DNA of 64,000 nt from Sphaerodactylus townsendi (taxonomy: Eukaryota): contig NC_059435.1 in assembly GCF_021028975.2 (NCBI RefSeq), positions 13,888,001 to 13,952,000 on the forward strand. Direction: 5' to 3'. This document shows, one piece after another, positions 46,075-59,228 of the stretch. The stretch's first letter is position 1. Each line of letters starts with the position of its first letter. Under the pieces are notes generated by a model that had not been told where the DNA came from, searched no databases, and was given only the letters and a program-made list of their open reading frames with translations. A program made the translations under genes and the position numbers.

Positions 46075-47363
46075 TGTAGCATCTCGTGAGGTCAGGAAAC
46101 CCATGCAGCTGATCAGCCTGTGTTGAAAGTGAGCTCACAGTGTCTCAGACCCTTAACTGGAATAGGGGACACTGCCCAGTGACCTTGTGTTGCAATGCCT
46201 CCAGTTTTATGCTGAAAGAAGGTGGGATATAAAGCAGAGGCGTACCAAAGGTAAATAGCGCCCGGATACAAATTGTCTCCAGGACGCCCCCCCAGGCTCT
46301 GCCCACCACTACCATAGCTCCACCCGCCACTGCCCTCGACCCCGCCCATGTCACCATGAACATGGCCAAGGTCTAGGGTGCCCACTCCCCCTGCTGGCCC
46401 GGCAGCCTGCCAGAAGAGACTGCAGTCCTGATGCCTTGTTGTTTTTGTGTGCCTCAACTGACACAGATGAGGTCGAGGCACGTGAAATGACGAGGCAGCA
46501 GGACTTCCTGGTCAGCTAATCTGCACCTTAACTCACACCAATCCTTCAATGTGGGCTAGTCCATCACACCTCCTATTTATTTCTTGCCTCAAAACGTTTT
46601 GGTTGTGCAGAAAGGGCTCTGTATTAGAGAATTCCAGAGGAACTGGCTTCAAGATCTGGACGGGGAGTATTATGTGCTGAATTTCTGCTGAAGCAAACAA
46701 AGAAATAGAGATGTGTTGCTGGTTTGCTAACAGGCTGACTGGAAGGAGATTGAGTTCTATAGCCAATGGGCAGTTAAAAACTGTTAGGATGGGGAAAGGC
46801 ATAAGAGGCAGCCCAAAGCACATCTGTTAACTGGTATTTGCGTGCTGAGTCCTGGGGAAACGATAAACATCTGAAAGTCTTTTAATAAATTGTAATAGCC
46901 AGTTTTGGTCAAAACATGATTCACTGGTAATGGGCTTTGAGAAGGAGGATCCCAGCTACAGGCTAAATGGCAAATAAGGGAAGAGGAGACCGTTTGAATT
47001 TGAACCCCTTTCCTTTCCTCCCTGCAGCTCACCAACCCCCATGGCTATGACTGTGTGGCCATTACTCCCTTCACCCCTGACCTGAATGGCCCAAGTTAGC
47101 CCAACCCCACCAGGTCTCAGAAGCTGAGGGTGACAGGGCACAATAATGGGTGTCAGTGTTATGCTGGATTGTCTCGATGCTACTGCCCCTTGGAGTGGAA
47201 TTCTGAGAAATGGAGGTGGCAGTTAGAGATGACTGTTAGCAGACTTCAGTGCTGAAGGGATTTTGGTTCTGAATGTGTTTTTGTTGATATTTGGTGTGTT
47301 CTTAAGAAATAAAAGCCAACGTTTTCTACACATCCTGTCTTTCCCCCTGATTGGAGTGTAACA
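46075..47363 (+). mobile_element. LTR-like element (family recurs at 55960-56620 and 57418-58800), with ~350 bp of extra sequence at ~46165-46510
   Basis: TGTAGCA...TGTAACA termini, flanks GAAG/TAAG, AATAAA at ~47308; high identity to the 56-59 kb copies. Confidence 0.65.
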
Positions 47364-47520
47364 TAAGCAGGGTCAAGCCTGCCTGGTCCTTGAATGGGAG
47401 ACCACCACAAAAGATCAGGGTTGCGATGTCGAAGCAGGCAATGGCTTCTGCTCCTCTCTGGCCTTGAAAACCCTACTGGGAGTCCCCTTAAGTCACTTGC
47501 ATCTTTAACAGCACTTTAAA
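47364..47520 (+). mobile_element. 5S rRNA-derived SINE fragment
   Basis: TAAGCAGGGTC..GCCTGG..CTTGAATGGGAGACCACC resembles the 5S internal promoter region and is followed by a non-5S body. Confidence 0.55.
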
Positions 47521-48469: not shown

Positions 48470-48602
48470 TTGATGATTCCTCTTTAATATGCAACTTATC
48501 CCTGAAATCAGCCTCCCTCCCTAAAGACTGGAAGATGGCCAATGTCACACCAATCTTTAAGAAAGGGTCTAGGGGGGACCAAGGAAATTACCGGCCAGTC
48601 AC
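48470..48602 (+). mobile_element. CR1 RT fragment
   Basis: PKDWKMANVTPIFKKGSRGDQGNYRPV. Confidence 0.8.
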
Positions 48603-48931
48603 AAAGCTTTTCAGCTTCTTTTTGTTTATGGAAAGGAGTCCCTTTTACAGTTATATATCTTTTAACAATACAGTTATAACACAAACAACTACAACAACAA
48701 AACCTTTATTAGGCATAAGTTAAAATCTCTACAAACAATAATTCTGTACATGGGTACAGAAATAGTCTAATATCCGGGTTGTAATAAAATATTATATACA
48801 AAGAAACTATCGGATATACTGATGATACATTGTTTAGCGATCAAACCATTAAAATCCATTTACATTATGGAATGGCTCACTTATCTTTTTATAAAATCAC
48901 ATGTAAGCCCGTGTTTTTATAACTTATATAA

Positions 48932-51900
48932 CTACCTAAGCTCAGGTTTTTGGTAGCATTTGTTGTTTATTACTTTTGCTAAGAAAGTTGCAACCTTAAG
49001 AGTTATTTCAGGGGACCGATCATTTAGTAAGTAAAATACTATGTGTGTTGCAGGTAGGCTAGGTTTTGTTTTAAGAAGTGGAGTAATATAAATACTACGT
49101 ATAGAAGAGTAGAACTGACAGTTTAAAAAGATATATGCTGGATTGAATCCCACTTCATTTTAATGGAGCATGGGACACCTTCTCTCTGAGATTGGTATGC
49201 CTTGATATCGTCCTTCCATTACTTTAGAGGGGAAGGAGTTAAGCCTAACCAGCACTCAAAATGCTCTGCGTTGAGATGGATCGTCAAGACCCCTAGCAGA
49301 AAAAAAAATATTGGGCCATCTTGCCATGCAAAAGGGTTAATTTTAGCTTGATTCAAGGAGAGCAAACTTGGCTGGTTGTTGAGGGGTTGAAACTTTTGCT
49401 GTTCCACATCAAGGGATTCTTTTGTCTAAGGAGCCCTAAAAATGCGTCTTACTCATCATTTAAAAAAGAGATTCAAAAAATCTCAATGAGAAGCCCAAAG
49501 TTTTTATTTTAATTTCTAAGTTAGTTAGCCAGGTTGTACTCAGTGGGTCAGATTTAAAGTAGGATAGGAGCGAACTTTCTTTTGCCTTAAAGAACATTTT
49601 CAGCCAGAGATCTAAAAAAAGGTAATCCACGCTTTTGTTTCCACACAGTGCAAAACCCAGTTCCAAGATATATTACTGAGTTTTGGAACGCATTTTGGGA
49701 CTCCCAGGATTTTTCTGTAGAAAACAGACTGAATTTTTTTTTTTTCTACTCATATGGGCTCCAAAGTCTTGGACTCCATAAAGGGTGCTCCATACAATAA
49801 AGGGAGATATTATTTTTTGCTTCAAAGAGATTTTGGAGGCAGCTGGGATAATTTGATTTCCTTTGGCATAAAAAAAAATTGTGTAATTGGAATGGAGGAG
49901 CAATTGGCAGTTCTGATTAGTTTTGCTTTTGTGTTTTAGTCCATGCGTGTTAAGGGTTGTATTGGAATATTATGCCCAGGTAATTAAACTCCTTTACTTG
50001 GGATAGGGAGTTACCTTCAATTTTCCAGTTTTAGAACGGCTTCCAGCTTTTTTGAAAAAACTATAATTTTTTGGATTTGAGGTAATTTATGAACCAATCT
50101 GGTTTTGTTTGACAGTAATTGTGAAAAGCTTGTAAATATCTTAGAAGGCCAACTCTAGTTGAATGAAAGAGAATGTAGTAGTATCGTCAGCATATAGTAG
50201 CAAAGGAGTGTCTCTGGTGTCTAATTTTGGGGGATGGCCATTGTTGACAGTTTTATTGAGCACTGGTGCTAAATCATTTAGAAATAAATTAAATAGGTTA
50301 TTGGAGCCAGAATGCATCCCTGTCTCAGCCTTGAGTATTGATCGGGGAATTTTGGAGATAATTCACCTTTGTTTGTACATTTAACCTGGCTATAATTATC
50401 AGAATGAATTTTTTTTGATGAGAAATAATAAGCGGGCTCCATCTGCAGCTTTCCCTAAGTTTTTTTTCCCAAAGTTATATTCCTTTGGAGAGAGTCAAAG
50501 GCACTTTTCAAATCAATAAATGCCACATATAATTTCTTTGTACCCTCTGTCCTTCATATATTTATTTGCTAAAAATGCCAGAAGAAAACAGTGGTCTATG
50601 GTAGATTTGCCATCTGTAAACCCAATTTGTTCTTGGTCCTATAATTGAATACCTAAGGATCCAGGCCTTAAGAATCGCAGCTCTAGATGTTTTGTGTAGA
50701 GAGTTTGCCTATGATAGATAATAGGCTAATAGGCCTACTATAATTTTCTGGGAAATTTGGGTTTGCCTTGCTTTTAAATATAGGGACAATGATGGAGTTG
50801 GAGCCAAGCCTCCGGAATAATCTCCAAAGCGATCTATTATTAGGTGAAAAAAGGTTTGCTAATGGTGGGAGACCACCAGTTGAGAATATTGTTTACTAGA
50901 AGCTCAGCCATGGGAATGCCCGTCAGGACCAGGTGCTTTCAGGTTTTAATTCTTGTATTAGCTCTTCTACTTCTTCTGCATTGACAGGAGTCCATACAGG
51001 AAGCTGGTTTAAAGTATTGTTGTCAATCAGTTTTAGGGGTTCACTAGAAACATTAAAGATGGAACAGTAATGGTTATTCCAGATATGAGGAGGAATACTT
51101 ATGGAAGGTGTTTGTTCTTTCAGATTTAGATGTCTTGCGACAATTTGCCAGAAAGTTTTCCCATTTTTTGAATTTAAGGCAGTAGCTAGTTGGTTCCAAT
51201 TTTGTTGGTAGAAGGCATTTTTTTTTGGATAATTTTTCTTCGGAACATTATTTTTTGATTTAATAAGTTTTTGAGAGACTCATGATCATTAAATTTACAA
51301 AATTGATTATGCAGGTATCTTAATAGTTTCTTATCCGTGTTACACTCTGCATCAAACCATGAGCAGGAGAAACCTACCAGTTGTTAGATTTGCAGTCACT
51401 GGAGGGTTTTGCCAAAAGATTTTTAGTAAGTCTATCAGGTTGGAATAATGCTTAATTATACTTTCATTGGACTTAGAGGAGACTAGCTCAAATCTGACTT
51501 TGCCCGCTTCATCTGAATCAAGTAATGTTGACAGTTTTCCCCCAGTTTCCTCATTCCAGATGATCCTTTTTAGGGTACTAGATTCCGGACAAGACTGGTC
51601 TTGAGTGATTGGTTCTTGGGTATTATATTTATACAGAAGAGAAACTTCGATTGGTATGTGATCACTTTCAGTTCTATTTCCTGTAGAGAACATGTCAATT
51701 ATTTTAAGAGTCTCACAGGTACACAGGCCATAGTCAATTACGCTACAACCTTGTGGGGAAATAAATGTATATTCTTTAGAAGAAGGAAATTTGTCTAAGC
51801 CATTTAAAATTACTAGATTATTGGCCATACAGAATTCAATTAACCTGAATCCCGCCTTATTTATTTTACAATCATTTGAGTTCCTTGGGTAAGATAAGAC

Positions 51901-52444
51901 AGCAGGTAACTCGTCATTTTTATCAAGGTTCAGCTGGTTGATCAGCGACAGATTACTGGCACCTATTCTGGCATTAAAGTCGCCTAAAAGAAAAATTCGA
52001 GAGAGATAGTATTTTGACCTTAATTCAATCCTCAAATAGTTAGTTAGTTTTTCCTGCATTGAGAGGCACGACATTAGAATGAGAAGCACGACATATATAT
52101 ACATTTATAATAATCAAATTATAATCTTGTAGTTGAATTGAAATTGCTTGAGCTAGAGGGTTTAATGGAGGAATTGAAAGCACTTGTATAGAATGTTTAT
52201 ATAGAATAGCTAATCCTCCGCTGGGGCGTCCTCTGTCCGCATTTTTCTGGGCATATAGGTTCTGAGAAATGTAGCCATCAAGTTTTATATCTCTTGTTGC
52301 CCAAGTTTCTTGCAGCAGTAGACAGTCAAATAATTTCACATAATTCATAAAATCTGGGTCCGATTGCTTATTTTCCCATCCTGCAATGTTCCAAGAAAGT
52401 ATTTGAAGCTTAGGGAGTGGGGTGACTGATGTGGAAGTAGGTAG
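48932..52444 (-). pseudogene. ORF2 (APE endonuclease plus reverse transcriptase) of the RTE-X-like element, frameshifted in this assembly
   Basis: ORF pieces 52040..52348, 51352..52104 and later fragments carry APE, RT and C-terminal RCPC..HI.F.C..Y / KVATFL motifs. Confidence 0.85.
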
Positions 52445-54049
52445 TCAATCTTCATTTGTAATTTGACCTAAAAGGTTACAGGTGTCAAAGAACACACATC
52501 CTTTTGCTTGTTGAGGAGTAGGAATACTTGAAGCCTTTTGGATGGGGCTCGATAGTTCTAATATAGCACCTTTCTGTTGGGTTGATAATGTTGTTGAGGT
52601 ACACTCCATTCTTTCTGTGTGTTGTTCATTTTGTACCTGTTTTGGGGACTCGGTTTCCAACAGTTCCTGTGCCCATGATTTGCTTTTGGGGGGCATGTTA
52701 AAGTCCACATCTAATATTCTATTGACATGTAAATCCACTTCATAGTCAATTTGTTCATTCATGTATTGTTTGGTAGGGTTTAAACTGGATGCCGTGGGAG
52801 GCTGAGATGGATCAGAATGAGTATGGATCAGCAGTTCATCACACTTCTTTAATAGGTTGGAAGGACTTTCAGTATTGAGAAGTAGTTGTTCATCTGTCTC
52901 AGAGCATAGTAGATTTGATTTAGACGTCTCAGAATAATTTACAAGGTAACGTTCGATTGGATTGGGTAGCATATTTAGGTCCACCTTGTCATCTGGTTCA
53001 ATAGCCCTGGTCTCAGTCTGTAGAGCAGTGGCAGGCTCTTTAGTAGTTGCAGCACTTAAGGCTTGGGCCACCCAAGGTTCAGGATTAAGGCTCTGAGGCC
53101 TGGGGTCCGACTTCACATGAGGTCCTCTATCAGGCAAACCGTTGTCCTTAACAACTCTGTCAACTTTAGTTTTGTAGATGAACGGTGTGATGTTCGCATT
53201 GGTAAACACACGTGTTGGACGGATCCTTTTCTGGGCAAGGGCCTGCAATTGATCTAATAATAGCCTTGGTATGGTTTCAGAGCCAAAAGTAAGAATGACT
53301 CTTTGTGGGTCATGCTCATATAGATTATGAATTTGGTCAAGCACTTTAGTTTCCAATAGGTCAATAATAGAGCTAGTCTTTTTTTTTAGTAAGATGCTGA
53401 GATGTCTTTTTGCCAGGTTTAAAGGAGCCCATATGGGTCTGACACCACGGTAATTATATACATAACAGCATACTTTGTTCTTCTCTAAAAGTAAACACTG
53501 AGTATCAATAGTGCTTTTATAAAACATTCTGGGTACAGGTTGGCTTACCCTGTTCGTGGTTAGCAGAGCTTTTTTAACAGTAGATAGCTGGTCATTGATG
53601 TTATTAAATTCACTAAAGATGTTTTTAAGAGTTCTTGCCACAAGATGGCATAGTTCATGGGTGCTGGGTACATCTGATATTGTTATTGGGAAGTTGTCTT
53701 CGATATTATTAGGGTTAGCCATCGGGTTTCCTGCAGTAAGATTAGATGCACAGTCTTCCGAGTTCTCTCTGCTGATTAAGGGGATAGGGTTACATTGAGT
53801 GGGTTTTTCCATGCCCTCCCATTCACAGTCACGTTCACCCAATCTGTGCTCTAGTTCTAGTAGAGAAAAACTGTTTGAAGTTGGAGTCAAAATAGTCGTT
53901 TTCTGTGCCGAGGTTAGATCATTTGTAACAAGAAAATCTCCTATTTTGAGTTGTTTACACAGTGGAGTGGAGATTAGCTCTGTCTCTTCCAGGTCTCTCT
54001 GCCTTTTTTTCCCGAGGCATTTCTCTATCAGGTTTATTAGCAGGGAAGA
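52445..54049 (-). CDS. ORF1 of the RTE-X-like element (frame open from ~54049; start codon uncertain)
   Basis: 481-aa ORF whose frame extends upstream through GKKRQRD...KQLKIGDF; ends at TGA 52447-52445 directly before the APE domain. Confidence 0.75.
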   Translation of the reverse strand, partial: SSLLINLIEKCLGKKRQRDLEETELISTPLCKQLKIGDFLVTNDLTSAQKTTILTPTSNSFSLLELEHRLGERDCEWEGMEKPTQCNPIPLISRENSEDCASNLTAGNPMANPNNIEDNFPITISDVPSTHELCHLVARTLKNIFSEFNNINDQLSTVKKALLTTNRVSQPVPRMFYKSTIDTQCLLLEKNKVCCYVYNYRGVRPIWAPLNLAKRHLSILLKKKTSSIIDLLETKVLDQIHNLYEHDPQRVILTFGSETIPRLLLDQLQALAQKRIRPTRVFTNANITPFIYKTKVDRVVKDNGLPDRGPHVKSDPRPQSLNPEPWVAQALSAATTKEPATALQTETRAIEPDDKVDLNMLPNPIERYLVNYSETSKSNLLCSETDEQLLLNTESPSNLLKKCDELLIHTHSDPSQPPTASSLNPTKQYMNEQIDYEVDLHVNRILDVDFNMPPKSKSWAQELLETESPKQVQNEQHTERMECTSTTLSTQQKGAILELSSPIQKASSIPTPQQAKGCVFFDTCNLLGQITNED

Positions 54050-55042
54050 TTAGGGCATATAATTCAGAATCTTCAGAATATGATAGAGACTAAATAGGTC
54101 TGCATTAGTAGGTTATAAACAACAATTAGCAGGCTGTTGTGCTTTGTAAAGGTAGTTGCACTGGCTATATTAGCTGGCGTTAAAATTAAAGAGAGGCGTT
54201 GGCTTATGCACTCCTCCGTTTTCGGCTTATCTAGGCTTTCTAGCTGTTTATTATAGCTTGGTATCAGTAGACAGAGCTTCAAAGCCTTCAGTTGTCTGCT
54301 AACAAGAAGCAGAAGTGGCAAAAGGAGATAAAAGCAGTCACGGCGAAGCCCTGAGGTTTGGTATATTTAAGCTGAATAAGGAGTTTTTCAACCGACCTGC
54401 AGCCGCGACACCATCTTCAATTTCCCCCCGAACTATCTTATAACACAAATCATATTATGTTTAGCACACACACTTGAACAAAGGGAAGAAAAATTTGAGC
54501 TAGGTTGCCGTCAACTCCCTTCCAAAACTGGAACATAGCTTCTCTTCTCACAGTTAGAAAAGGGTAAATCATTTGTCTCCCTTATTTATGCAATATCTTT
54601 AAACAAGTGAGCCTACAATCTCTTGTTACTTCTGTGTAACTTAATTCCATAAGGCTTTCTCTTTCAAAGCTATTTGGAAACAAAGAGCCTGCCAAGAAAT
54701 ACTATGTTGGTTACTGGAGGCTTCACTCTTTAAGTCTGAAAATTTTTAGATTTTAAAAGGTACACAGACGTGCTCCAGTTCCCCAGTTTTCCTTTCTTCC
54801 TGCAGCTGTTAAAAGACTGGTCTCTGGTACTAAACTTTTGTCTGGAATTCTTGCTCTTTGAAAACTGGGTACAAGGCTACATCATCTAAGAAAACTGAGG
54901 CACATATTTAGCAAAACACAGCCTTCAAGGCATAAAAGTGAAAAGTTACTGCAAAATAGGCAATTTTCTCAAAGGATGGTAGGAAACAGACTTTAAACAG
55001 TCAGGGAGGGAGGTGAAGATGCTCCCTGTTAAGACGCTAAAG

Positions 55043-55959: not shown

Positions 55960-58800
55960 TAGAAGGTCAGGAAACCCACGCAGCCGATCAGCCTGTGTTG
56001 AAAGTGAGCTCACGGTGTCTCAGACCCTTAACTGGAATTTGATACTAAGGCCAGCTAATCTGCACCTTAACCCACACCAATCCTTCCATGTGGGCTAGTC
56101 CATCACACCTCCTATTTATTTCTTGCCTCAAAACGTTTTGGTTATGCAGAAAGGGCTCTGTATTAGAGAATTCCAGAGGAACTGGCTTCAGACCTGGACG
56201 GGGAGTATTATGTGCTGAATTTCTGCTGAAGCAAACAAAGAAATAGAGATGTGTTGCTGGTTTGCTAACAGGCTGACTGGAAGGAGATTGAGTTCTATAG
56301 CCAATGGGCAGTTAAAAACCGTTAGGATGGGGAAAGGCATAAGAGGCAGCCCAAAGCACATCTGTTAACTGGTATTTGTGTGCTGAGTCCTGAGGAAACT
56401 ATAAACATCTGAAAGTCTTTTAATAAATCGTAATAGCCAGTTTTGGTCAAAACATGATTCACTGGCAATGGGCTTTGAGAAGGAGGATCCCAGCTACAGG
56501 CTAAATGGCAAATAAGGGAAGAGGAGACCGTTTGAATTTGAACCCCTTTCCTTTCCTCCCTGCAGCTCACCAACCCCCATGACTATGACTGTGTGGCCAT
56601 TACTCCCTTCACCTCTGACCTCTGATATTATTGCATCAGATGTAACCACCAGCCCCTATGCCGGTATTTTGGTCACAGAGCAGGTGACAGGATCTGAACA
56701 AAAATCATTTTCTATAAACAGTCCATGTCTGCCATAAAGCTGTAAGCTGTCAGCACGTAGCTAACACTCAGCAGAATAGAAAAGAGGACTCCGTTGTATT
56801 AGGTCACAGAAGTAACAAAACAAAAGGTCTTTCTCTAGGCCAGCTTCTTTGGCAATATTCGTTTGCAAGATAAGAGCCTGTCAGAAATGTGTGTGTGTTC
56901 TTTGTTCATTATACCAACTGTATGGGAATAATGAAGCTTCTGACATGTTGAAAGTATCCGTAAATGTTCTGGCTTAGTACGCCTTTTATTCTTGGCTTGC
57001 ATCCTGAAAAATGCTTTAAAAAGCTCTGATACTTGTCATTCTGTGAGATTTTTCTCTTGGTGCTGATCAGACCCTTTTAATCTGAATAAAATTTAATTCT
57101 ACTTGGTTTTGTTTTTTGCTTTACTGATCTAAACTTGCTATCCTGGCTTAAGGCAGACCCTGCCTTCCATTGAGGTAAAAAAGGGAACTTCTCTCTCTGT
57201 GCTAACAGGTTTTCCTATAGAGGCTGATTGGAACTTAGGTCCTGTCTCTTGTAAGACTGATTGGGATCTGAAAACAGGTTTTAAATAAAAGGAAAGATTT
57301 CATTGTCTTCCATTGAGACTGGGTGAAATCTAAATTGGGACATATTAAAAGGAAAGATTCCTGTCTTCCATTGAGACTGTTTGGAATCTAGGGTCTGTGC
57401 TAACACAAAAAAAGAAAAAGAGATGTGTTGCTGGTTTGCTAATGTAACAACGGAGTAACGAATTTAAAATAAATAAGCCCAAAGAAGCTCAAGCCGATAC
57501 AGAATAAAATCAAAGAGATCTTTATTCGGCCAACTGCGGGCAAGACAATATCAGGGGAGCCACACCTAAAAAGGCGGTGCGTTCTCACTTTTAGAGTATT
57601 AATGACAATCTATATCAAAATGGCAGCATATACCCCAAAATGCCCACATTCATCAATCAATCACAAAAAGTTGGAGATTTTCCCTGTTCCCACAGCCCTT
57701 TGGGGTTGTCCAAGATCCTCATTGGAAGATGTCAGTATTTCACTCTTTGACGTTATGTGAATCAAAAACCCTTGTTTCTCTTATCATGTATGTTTCAAGT
57801 TGCTCTATTCCTTTAGACAAAGAGTCTGAGCTTTCTCATAGGCCTTCTTATTGTTCTCAGGAAAAAAGCAACTTTTGAGGTATCTCTTGGGTACAACAGG
57901 ATCTTAAAAACAGTTTAGCTTGCACATTTTGTATAATTGTGAAGAATGGGACATTTTTGGAGTTATTAGGCTAAGCTGGCAATAGAAAAGAATAGGTTTA
58001 AGGCCTGCATGATTTCTTTGGTCAGCAGCTTTATGGTTGCCATCTTTCCATTATAGGAAAAATAATGGAAGGAAGGAAGACATAATCTTTCTGGTTGAAT
58101 CTAAAACCCTCTTCCTCTGACTTTCTACCACTTGCTCTGACTTTCTACTTATGTTTCTTCTGCGCCTGCACTAGCAGGCTGACTGGAAGGAGGCTGAGTT
58201 CTATAGCCAATGGGCAGTTAAAAACCGTTAGGATGGGGAAAGGCATAAGAGGCAGTCCAAAGCACATCTGTTAACTAGTATTTGTGTGCTGAGTCCTGGG
58301 GAAACGATAAACATCTGAAAGTCTTTTAATAAATCTTAATGGCCAGCTCTGGTCAAAACATGATTCACTGATAATGGATTTTGAGGAGGAGGATCCCAGC
58401 CACAGGCAAAATGGCCAATGAGGGAGGAAGAGACCGTTTGCATTTGAACCCCTTTTCCTTCCTCCCTGCAACCCACCAATGCCCATGGCTATGACTGTGT
58501 GGCCATTACTCCTTTTACCCCTGACTTGGAGGGCCAAGGCTAGCCCAACCCCACCAGGTCTCAGAAGCTGAGGGTGATAGGGCACAATAACGGGTGTCAG
58601 CTGGATTGTCTCGATGCTACTGCCCCTTGGACTGGAATTCTGAGAAATGGAGGTGGCAGTTAGAGATGACCGTTAGCAGGCTTCAGTGCTGAAGGGATTT
58701 TGGTTCTGAACGTGTTTTTGTTCATATTTGGTGTGTTCTTAAGAAATAAAAGTCAACGTTTTCTACACATCTTGTCTTTCCCCCTGATTGGAGTGTAACA
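55960..58800 (+). mobile_element. Nested LTR cluster: two partial copies of the 46075-47363 LTR family plus other LTR-like inserts
   Basis: 55960-56620 and 57418-57442/58175-58800 align to 46088-47363. Confidence 0.7.
57443..58170 (-). mobile_element. Solo LTR nested in another LTR
   Basis: TGTAACA...TGCA termini; 4-bp TSD CTAA/CTAG; the host reads GGTTTGCTAA|CAGGCTGACTGG once it is removed; minus-strand AATAAA at ~57521. Confidence 0.75.
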
Positions 58801-59228
58801 TAACCAGAATGTTGAGCTGGGTCAGACATAAAAGGATGATGTTTAACAAAACATGCAAATCAGTATGAAACAACATACTTTGATGTGCATGAGAGTTATG
58901 AGAAATCAATCTTAGAGTCTCTGTGCAATTTCTGTGTTGTCATGATTTTGTATGTATTTAAGTTTAAATGCATTGCTTTCCAAAGCTTTTGAAAACACGT
59001 AAGCTAAGAACACTGGAATTGAACCATTGTAAGAGCCTTTGGTCGGCGTTTTGTGTCTCAGTGGCAACTACTGTTGATGATTTAAACCAAAGAAATATTT
59101 TGCTGACTGAAACGTAGTTCACAGGGTGTCAGTCATGGTAATGACGTAGGCCTGCGCCGTTTTCAATGTCTCGAAAAAGCTTTCCCCCCCATAGTCTTGA
59201 TTACAAAAAAGAGTATGATTTCTCTGTC

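Follow-up and report, generated by a model that had tools for sequence, protein, structure and literature searches.

Non-LTR retrotransposons (LINEs) with two genes must produce ORF2p from a bicistronic RNA behind a long ORF1, and how this is done is a long-standing question. The solutions on record are termination-reinitiation, which operates in L1 and in human L1 does not depend on an AUG; stop-start coupling at an overlapping UAAUG, as in SART1; 2A peptides in single-ORF LINEs; and frameshifting (PMC5972666, PMC3894237). In the stop codon readthrough classes of Beier and Grimm, summarized in PMC3159437, type I sites carry the hexamer CAR-YYA immediately 3' of the stop, while type II sites, including the alphavirus nsP3/nsP4 opal codon, consist of UGA followed by CUA or CGG. 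Alphaviruses and most type II plant viruses additionally have an extended 3' stem-loop that raises readthrough 3- to 14-fold (PMC3159437). Gammaretroviruses produce Gag-Pol by readthrough of UAG (type III), such that a structural, RNA-binding protein is made in excess and the polymerase is made as a rare C-terminal fusion in the same frame. In vertebrate cells, a set of cellular genes with UGA-CUAG (OPRL1, OPRK1, AQP4, MAPK10, and MDH1) is read through by a context-only signal that works with about 12 nt of 3' sequence; UGA is the best stop, UGA-CUA alone gave 1.5%, and CAR-YYA also works after UGA (PMC4132726). Across both studies, UGA-CUA alone gives about 0.4-2% readthrough in reporters (PMC3159437, PMC4132726).

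Here, we describe a LINE from the gecko Sphaerodactylus townsendi in which ORF1 and ORF2 are separated by a single in-frame UGA followed by C. The element lies within a 64,000-nucleotide stretch (referred to here as the window; assembly GCF_021028975.2, contig NC_059435.1, positions 13,888,001 to 13,952,000), in which no other copy was found. The original prediction held that ORF2 of this element is apparently expressed by readthrough of a UGA-CUA stop and that the first in-frame ATG lies downstream of the N-terminal endonuclease (APE) motif SWN. The underlying observation was confirmed. On the minus strand, ORF1 ends GAT-TGA, CTA follows (the next base being C), and the same frame stays open for another 134 codons (52444..52043), which encode a short linker and then SWNIAGW. 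The first in-frame ATG is codon 32 after the stop, which is after SWN (codon 16) but before QET (codon 44).

To determine whether the stop is a private mutation, we retrieved eleven other lineages of the same LINE group from lizard genomes and from host DNA in metagenomes, although the hosts of most metagenome-derived contigs are unknown. The lineages are highly diverged: DNA identity after the stop is at most 0.66, and third-position identity between lineages is 0.28-0.39, which means that silent sites are saturated. In 12 of 12 lineages, there is exactly one stop between ORF1 and APE, this stop is TGA, the next base is C, ORF2 is in the ORF1 frame, and no in-frame ATG precedes the (S/C/F)WN motif. 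The first ATG lies 23-303 codons after the stop or is absent from the sequence obtained. The linker varies in length (5, 11, 13, 14, 16, or 18 codons) but never breaks the frame. Because the arrangement recurs in all 12 diverged lineages, it is more than chance. Two relatives, designated L002 and L013, keep 1125 and 1136 open codons after the stop, so intact elements carry the arrangement, and their ORF2 terminators are ordinary (TGA-G and TAA-A). One further copy, from Phrynocephalus (L008), has ORF1 followed directly by the RT part with the APE deleted and therefore has no junction. A degenerate scan of JGI metagenomes for the (S/C/F)WN(I/V)AGW..K block gave 52 loci, none of which had the QET motif downstream; all are thus chance matches.

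The nucleotide context of the stop is also constrained. The +4 base is C in every lineage even though the encoded residue changes (Leu, Gln, or Arg), whereas C makes up only 22% of first codon positions and 36% of Leu codons are TTR. Nine of 12 contexts equal a published readthrough motif, with CUA or CGG in six and CAR-YYA in three (L002, L010, and L011). The chance probability of this is about 2e-6 under independence, but the lineages share ancestry and the value is not a true P value. The remaining three lineages have off-motif contexts (CUU-CCA, CUG-UCA, and CAA-CAA). Farther downstream, +7 is a pyrimidine in 10 of 10 lineages, and +9 and +10 are A in 8 of 10. In contrast, the predicted 3' stem-loop is not there: z-scores for the 140 nt after the stop are -1.2 to +0.75 in 10 lineages, single-sequence folding likewise gave no structure, and the RNAalifold consensus is -0.9 kcal/mol with 5 trivial pairs. 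As type II viral sites usually have such a structure (PMC3159437), readthrough may be only about 1%.

The family is multicopy in four organisms. In a sequencing run of a related or the same species, a 1013-letter contig of depth 271 spans 52270-53282, and thereby the junction, with 4 other letters and no gaps. Minority copies with another codon at the stop cannot be excluded. Features of the element are collected in the table below.

Features of the S. townsendi element in window coordinates (all on the minus strand)
Position	Feature	Supporting observations
48675..54417 (-)	Full-length but defective non-LTR retrotransposon (about 5.7 kb): 5' UTR, ORF1, TGA, ORF2 (APE-RT), 3' UTR	Multicopy contigs from four runs stop matching at 54417 at the 5' side and reach 48704 at the 3' side; depth rises towards the 3' end, as expected for 5'-truncated LINE copies; 3' limit approximate
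54018..54020 (-)	ATG that would give the family-type N-terminus, one base out of frame with ORF1 in this copy	ORF1 frame reads GKKRQRDLEE..KQLKIGDF, matching the relatives' MGxxKRxR..KQxKIGDF; the ATG sits in another frame next to an A-run
52448..54049 (-)	ORF1 open frame (534 stop-free codons)	First in-frame ATG at 53812, which would give 455 codons; a 481-aa ORF is listed at 52445..53890
53549..53662 (-)	ORF1p predicted long helix (residues 77-114 of the 481-aa ORF), probably a coiled coil	AlphaFold2 model, pLDDT 66-90; coiled coil inferred
53189..53503 (-)	ORF1p predicted alpha/beta domain (residues 130-234), RRM-like	AlphaFold2 model, pLDDT about 85-95; weak fold-level lead
52445..52447 (-)	In-frame UGA between ORF1 and ORF2, the proposed readthrough site	TGA in 12 of 12 lineages
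52439..52444 (-)	3' context CUA-CCU	+4 C invariant in the group; UGA-CUA is the type II triplet
52397..52444 (-)	16-codon Pro/Ser/Thr-rich linker between the stop and the APE domain	No ATG
52043..52396 (-)	N-terminal part of the APE endonuclease in the ORF1 frame (SWNIAGW ... LQETW), ending at the first frame break	Pfam PF03372, profile positions 1-94, E 4e-6; 40% identity by tblastn with the intact ORF2 of L002
52346..52348 (-)	First in-frame ATG after the stop	Downstream of the SWN motif that holds the catalytic Asn
52014..52073 (-)	Cluster of substitutions and 11 gap letters relative to the high-depth family contigs, at the first ORF2 frame break	383 letters aligned over 390; lesion probably private to this copy or to a minority of copies
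48935..52104 (-)	Rest of ORF2 (APE C-terminal part, RT with YADD, C-terminal Cys/His motif), split over all three frames with several stops	tblastn pieces at 52059-51637, 51222-50281, 50701-50168, 50174-49962, and 49276-48974 in different frames
48675..48934 (-)	3' UTR ending in AATAAAG followed by a short TTG-rich tail	L002 ends AATAAATAAA plus (TGA)3; contig homology reaches 48704

Assignment to the APE-type LINEs rests on matches to PF03372 and PF14529 in the window, on the RT pieces detected by tblastn, and on the intact relative L002, which has PF03372 plus PF00078 (E 1.5e-33); the best PDB sequence match is the human L1 ORF2p RT. In attempts to name the clade, ORF2 protein hits were unnamed, PDB sequence scores did not discriminate clades, and an atlas search gave only weak leads to the baculovirus FP C-terminal domain. 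ORF1 gave no Pfam or PDB sequence match and is 20-25% identical to those of the 12 aligned relatives from other lineages (local identities of 24-43%). For the predicted alpha/beta domain, the top Foldseek matches are RRMs, including the human LINE-1 ORF1p central domain (2w7a), but all have E above 1e-3. Protein searches for close copies found only P0001, an annotated S. townsendi "uncharacterized protein" built on this ORF1, to which residues 217-481 are 100% identical, illustrating that gene callers split or misannotate these elements. The window copy itself is a dead member of the family; ORF2 is broken by many frameshifts and stops and the ORF1 start is shifted, so nothing functional is made from this locus.

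Taken together, the anatomy and its conservation support the original prediction, and programmed, context-only UGA readthrough is the best explanation, one that we hold with moderate confidence given that readthrough, its level, and the activity of the fusion are inferred from sequence. In this model, ORF2 has no start codon of its own. Most ribosomes terminate at the UGA and release ORF1p, while a small fraction, of the order of 1% by analogy with reporters carrying UGA-CUA, inserts a near-cognate amino acid and continues through a short flexible linker into APE-RT, yielding an ORF1-ORF2 fusion of roughly 1,600 residues. This would fix a high ORF1p:ORF2p ratio and tie the enzyme to the RNA and the ORF1p particle that encoded it. 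A broader possibility, which we regard as somewhat more likely than not, is that a whole, anciently diversified group of vertebrate (squamate) LINEs makes its endonuclease and reverse transcriptase only in this way, with the ORF1p:ORF2p ratio set by stop codon context alone.

The main alternative is AUG-independent termination-reinitiation, in which ribosomes release ORF1p at the UGA, stay on the RNA, and restart at a non-AUG codon in the linker, as proposed for human L1 (cited in PMC5972666). This route is not excluded: it needs no RNA structure, it fits the absence of an ATG before SWN as well as readthrough does, and a weak terminator such as UGA-C might lengthen ribosome dwell time. However, reinitiation gives no reason for ORF2 to stay in the ORF1 frame through at least five linker-length changes, for the stop to be TGA rather than TAA or TAG at saturated divergence, for the +4 C, or for contexts that match readthrough motifs in 9 of 12 lineages. 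Nor is there a conserved candidate restart codon, as the first codon after the stop is CUA, CUU, CUG, CAA, CAG, or CGG. We consider it unlikely.

It is still less probable that the conserved TGA-C reflects phylogenetic inertia or chance, with ORF2 expressed in some unrelated way (e.g., from a processed or internally initiated RNA) or with these lineages all being nonautonomous. The lineages do descend from one ancestor, and many of the copies examined are defective (the window copy and relatives L001, L005, L009, L010, and L014). Yet silent sites are saturated, the +5 and +6 bases have turned over while TGA and +4 C have not, L002 and L013 retain intact ORF2s, and no conserved AG acceptor or ATG lies near the junction. 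Recoding of the UGA as selenocysteine, for which it is the only codon used, or by A-to-I editing to UGG is only a remote possibility. No SECIS was found, there being no Rfam match at gathering score in L002, L013, or L015 (the last a relative with UGA-CUAG) and only one chance-level hit, to another family, in the window element. No double-stranded structure that could serve as an ADAR substrate surrounds the stop, and a +4 C is not a feature of either mechanism.

In comparison with the alphavirus and other type II sites, the element shares a UGA followed by C, most often CUA or CGG, upstream of the polymerase, conservation of the opal codon across diverged relatives, and, if readthrough occurs, an enzyme made as a minor fusion product; it differs in lacking a detectable 3' stem-loop and in being a nuclear retrotransposon with no known protease that would free the enzyme. 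The vertebrate cellular genes also rely on context alone, and L015 has exactly their UGA-CUAG, whereas the window copy has CUAC; moreover, readthrough in those genes yields a short C-terminal extension, while about 1,100 codons encoding the essential enzyme lie behind the stop here. Relative to described LINE strategies, there is no inter-ORF spacer with an AUG, no AUG overlapping the TGA, and no NPGP motif in any lineage (in the window copy, ORF1 ends ITNED and the linker starts LPTS). The two reviews consulted do not list readthrough for LINEs, and within the literature searched we found no report of it for ORF2 of an animal LINE. This group would add stop codon readthrough to the known solutions, with a natural ORF1-ORF2 fusion bearing on cis-preference and particle stoichiometry, and would offer twelve natural, structure-free readthrough contexts tuned by selection in vertebrate cells. 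This may be of practical interest, as lizard LINEs are being developed as gene-insertion tools (PMC13708176). A partial precedent may exist in plant L1-type LINEs (the Arabidopsis ATLN/Ta11 group), in which orf1 and orf2 appear to be in frame and separated by an amber codon for which suppression was possibly proposed, although that case would involve UAG rather than UGA-C, plants rather than vertebrates, and an unrelated ORF1. The proposed logic, a polymerase made as a rare C-terminal fusion in the same frame, is that of gammaretroviral Gag-Pol, but here the stop is UGA-C without structure and, as LINEs have no protease, the fusion would have to act uncleaved.

On the minus strand, the junction reads ...AAT GAA GAT TGA CTA CCT..., and the frame upstream of the TGA is free of stops for 534 codons. 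After the TGA, the same frame stays open for 134 codons, encoding a 16-codon Pro/Ser/Thr-rich linker followed by SWNIAGW...LQETW, which Pfam aligns from position 1 of the Exo_endo_phos profile. The first in-frame ATG after the stop is codon 32 and lies behind the SWN motif that carries the catalytic Asn. The original prediction described an ORF1 ending in TGA, an APE motif continuing in the same frame, and a first ATG downstream of SWN; every statement in that observation is correct.

Coordinates of the features of the element and of its surroundings (window positions unless a relative or an alignment is named)
Feature	Position	Strand
Element (5' UTR, ORF1, TGA, ORF2, 3' UTR)	about 54417 to 48675	minus
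ATG that would give the family-type N-terminus	54020	
ORF1 open frame	54049..52448	minus
ORF1 N-terminal motifs	53930-53953	minus
ORF1 motif location in L007	L007 about 2090-2115	
Region of annotated protein P0001 (UniRef A0ACB8FTD0)	52448-53416 approx.	
TGA between ORF1 and ORF2	52447-52445	minus
First in-frame ATG after the stop	52348	minus
SWN codons (alignment columns 58-62)	about 52391-52397	
LQE codons (alignment columns 145-149)	about 52305-52312	
First break in ORF2	near 52043-52104	
ORF2 with indels and stops	48935-52104	
RT-like fragment of another LINE	48505-48609	plus
371-bp repeat segment and its second copy	47000-47370 and 58444-58807	
84-bp repeat piece and its second copy	47000-47083 and 56538-56621	
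Related copy lacking the APE domain (Phrynocephalus forsythii)	L008:6001-9304	
Private premature stop in ORF1 of L009	L009:1285-1287	
Private premature stop in ORF1 of L014	L014:1420-1422	

The element, from the gecko Sphaerodactylus townsendi, consists of a 5' UTR, ORF1, the TGA, ORF2 (APE, RT with YADD, and a C-terminal Cys/His motif), and a 3' UTR that ends AATAAAG plus a short TTG-rich tail. Contigs from four public runs, representing four organisms, lie on the element with depths of hundreds, and depth rises towards the 3' end, as it does for a 5'-truncating LINE family. The public annotation of S. townsendi carries a 323-aa "uncharacterized protein" (P0001), a gene model built on this ORF1; it matches in two stretches, and its C-terminal 265 residues are 100% identical to ORF1 residues 217-481. 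P0001 is probably a transposon-derived annotation artifact. Neither the protein hits, which carry no clade names, nor PDB scores, which do not discriminate, allowed the clade to be named. Just beyond the 3' end of the element, a 371-bp segment is repeated at 91.6% identity 11 kb away and an 84-bp piece is repeated at 97.6%; these belong to another interspersed repeat and are not part of this LINE. A 35-residue RT-like match (46% to residues 539-573 of the ORF2 of L002, an intact relative) lies on the opposite strand next to the 3' end of the element and is a fragment of another LINE.

ORF1 has no Pfam or PDB sequence match. An AlphaFold2 model built on an alignment of 14 ORF1s shows a long helix (residues 77-114) and a confident alpha/beta domain (residues 130-234). 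The best Foldseek matches of the model are RRMs, including the central domain of human L1 ORF1p, although all have E-values above 1e-3. We read ORF1p as a putative coiled-coil plus RRM-like RNA-binding protein, which is an inference at the level of the fold. The ORF1 N-termini, including those of the related proteins P0004, P0006, P0007, P0009, P0010, P0013, and P0014, share MGxxKRxR, which resembles a nuclear localization signal, followed by KQxKIxDF(F/Y/L). In P0009 (QTKISEFF), and again near the C terminus of the ORF1 of lineage L007 (QRKITDFF), this is a canonical PCNA-binding PIP box, QxxIxxFF. Human L1 appears to carry its PIP box in ORF2p; here it would sit on ORF1p.

The window copy itself is dead. 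ORF2 is spread over all three frames and carries several stops, and its first break coincides with a cluster of substitutions and 11 gap letters relative to the high-depth family contigs; this lesion is probably not the state of the family. The ATG that would give the family-type N-terminus is one base out of frame with ORF1, next to an A-run. In contrast, ORF1 is nearly identical to the high-depth contigs, with 4 other letters in 1013 and none in two 315-letter contigs. Uneven decay, a mosaic or converted copy, or an ORF1-only amplifying subfamily are all possible explanations for this difference between the two ORFs.

To determine whether the stop is private to this copy, we scanned 1.8 billion representative proteins with ORF1 using HMMER, which gave 17 hits of 150-612 residues. 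Retrieval of the corresponding contigs, together with the contig of an ORF2 relative, yielded eleven further lineages with the junction, and copies were compared site by site. Named relatives come from Sphaerodactylus, Phrynocephalus, and Zootoca, and one lineage (L015) comes from an NCBI assembly, while the hosts of the ENA and Logan contigs are not known.

Junction contexts of the twelve lineages (last ORF1 codon, stop, and next two codons; WIN is the window copy, and L numbers denote the retrieved contigs)
Lineage	Context
WIN	GAT-TGA-CTA-CCT
L001	GAT-TGA-CTT-CCA
L002 (also L003, L004)	GAC-TGA-CAG-TTA
L005 (also L006)	GAT-TGA-CTG-TCA
L007	AAA-TGA-CGG-TTA
L009	AAA-TGA-CTA-CAG
L010	AAT-TGA-CAA-TCA
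L011	GAC-TGA-CAA-TTA
L012	GAC-TGA-CTA-TCA
L013	GCA-TGA-CAA-CAA
L014	GAC-TGA-CTA-TCG
L015	ATC-TGA-CTA-GCA

The stop is not private. In all twelve lineages, there is exactly one stop between ORF1 and the APE motif, ORF2 is in the ORF1 frame, and no ATG precedes the (S/C/F)WN motif; the first ATG comes 23 to 303 codons after the stop, or not at all within the available sequence. L002 and L013 keep 1125 and 1136 open codons behind the stop, and L007 stays open to the end of its contig (more than 871 codons). Intact elements therefore carry the arrangement. Two relatives, L009 and L014, carry an extra, private premature stop inside ORF1, upstream of the conserved junction TGA, which shows what a private nonsense mutation looks like in this group. 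In a related copy from Phrynocephalus forsythii (L008), ORF1 is followed directly by the RT part of ORF2 (from about residue 361), such that the APE domain is deleted; the annotated 509-aa gene P0008 splices this ORF1 to other LINE pieces.

The lineages are deeply diverged. DNA identity over the 200 nt after the stop, which is the most conserved part of APE, is 0.51 on average and 0.66 at most, and third-codon-position identity is 0.39 in the SWN-QET block and 0.28 in the last 20 ORF1 codons, which means saturation. At this depth, a free stop would have drifted among TGA, TAA, and TAG, yet it is TGA in 12 of 12. The codon after the stop encodes Leu, Gln, or Arg, so its second and third bases have turned over, yet its first base is C in 12 of 12, although C is only 22% of first positions in these ORFs and 36% of their Leu codons are TTR. 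Further positions look constrained at the nucleotide level: +7 is a pyrimidine in 10 of 10, and +9 and +10 are A in 8 of 10. Nine of the twelve contexts equal a published readthrough signal, of which six have UGA-CUA or UGA-CGG (type II) and three have CAR-YYA. Under independence, the chance of nine or more is about 2e-6, a figure that is indicative only because the lineages are related. The linker varies between 5, 11, 13, 14, 16, and 18 codons without ever shifting the frame. By contrast, the two complete ORF2s end in TGA-G and TAA-A, which are ordinary strong terminators.

We found no RNA structure following the stop. For the window, the 151 nt from 52450 down to 52300 give a z-score of +0.3; ten lineages give z-scores of -1.2 to +0.75 over 140 nt; and the alignment fold is -0.9 kcal/mol, with five pairs. 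The SWN codons (UCCUGG) and the LQE codons (CCAGGA) are complementary over 5 bp in all lineages, but this is almost certainly a by-product of amino-acid conservation. The 3' stem-loop that the original prediction proposed to test for is not supported. There is also no SECIS or other Rfam family in the window element or in L002, L013, and L015, no 2A motif, no ATG overlapping the stop, and no conserved splice acceptor at the junction.

The best-supported reading, which we consider probable, is programmed, context-only UGA readthrough, in which ORF1p is the main product and an ORF1-linker-APE-RT fusion is a minor one, perhaps of the order of 1% by analogy with published reporters. That readthrough occurs, its level, and that the fusion is the active form are inferred from the anatomy, its conservation, and the match to known leaky contexts. 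The main rival is AUG-independent termination-reinitiation, as proposed for human L1 (PMC5972666). Reinitiation explains the missing ATG, but it does not explain the invariant TGA, the invariant +4 C, the motif matches, or the strict frame maintenance, and we regard it as unlikely. Phylogenetic inertia or another route of ORF2 expression appears more doubtful still, and editing or selenocysteine insertion is only a remote possibility; a small remainder is left unassigned.

Readthrough contexts have been grouped into classes. Type I is UAG-CAR-YYA, type II is UGA-CGG or UGA-CUA (alphaviruses and several plant viruses), and type III is UAG-G plus a pseudoknot (PMC3159437). In the same work, Sindbis UGA-CUA with only 3 nt of 3' sequence was measured at 0.4% in vitro and 2.0% in cells. 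In human cells, UGA-CUA alone gives 1.5% readthrough, while UGA-CUAG genes reach up to 31%; 12 nt of 3' sequence suffice, UGA is the best stop for the motif, and CAR-YYA also works after UGA (PMC4132726). L015 has exactly UGA-CUAG. Two reviews of ORF2 translation in non-LTR elements list reinitiation, stop-start coupling, and 2A, but not readthrough; a recoding review adds frameshifting and considers bypassing; and our full-text searches found no report of readthrough for an animal LINE. Some Arabidopsis L1-type LINEs may, however, have an in-frame amber codon between the ORFs. The proposed mechanism is therefore not categorically new; it is Gag-Pol-style readthrough, here in a vertebrate LINE group.
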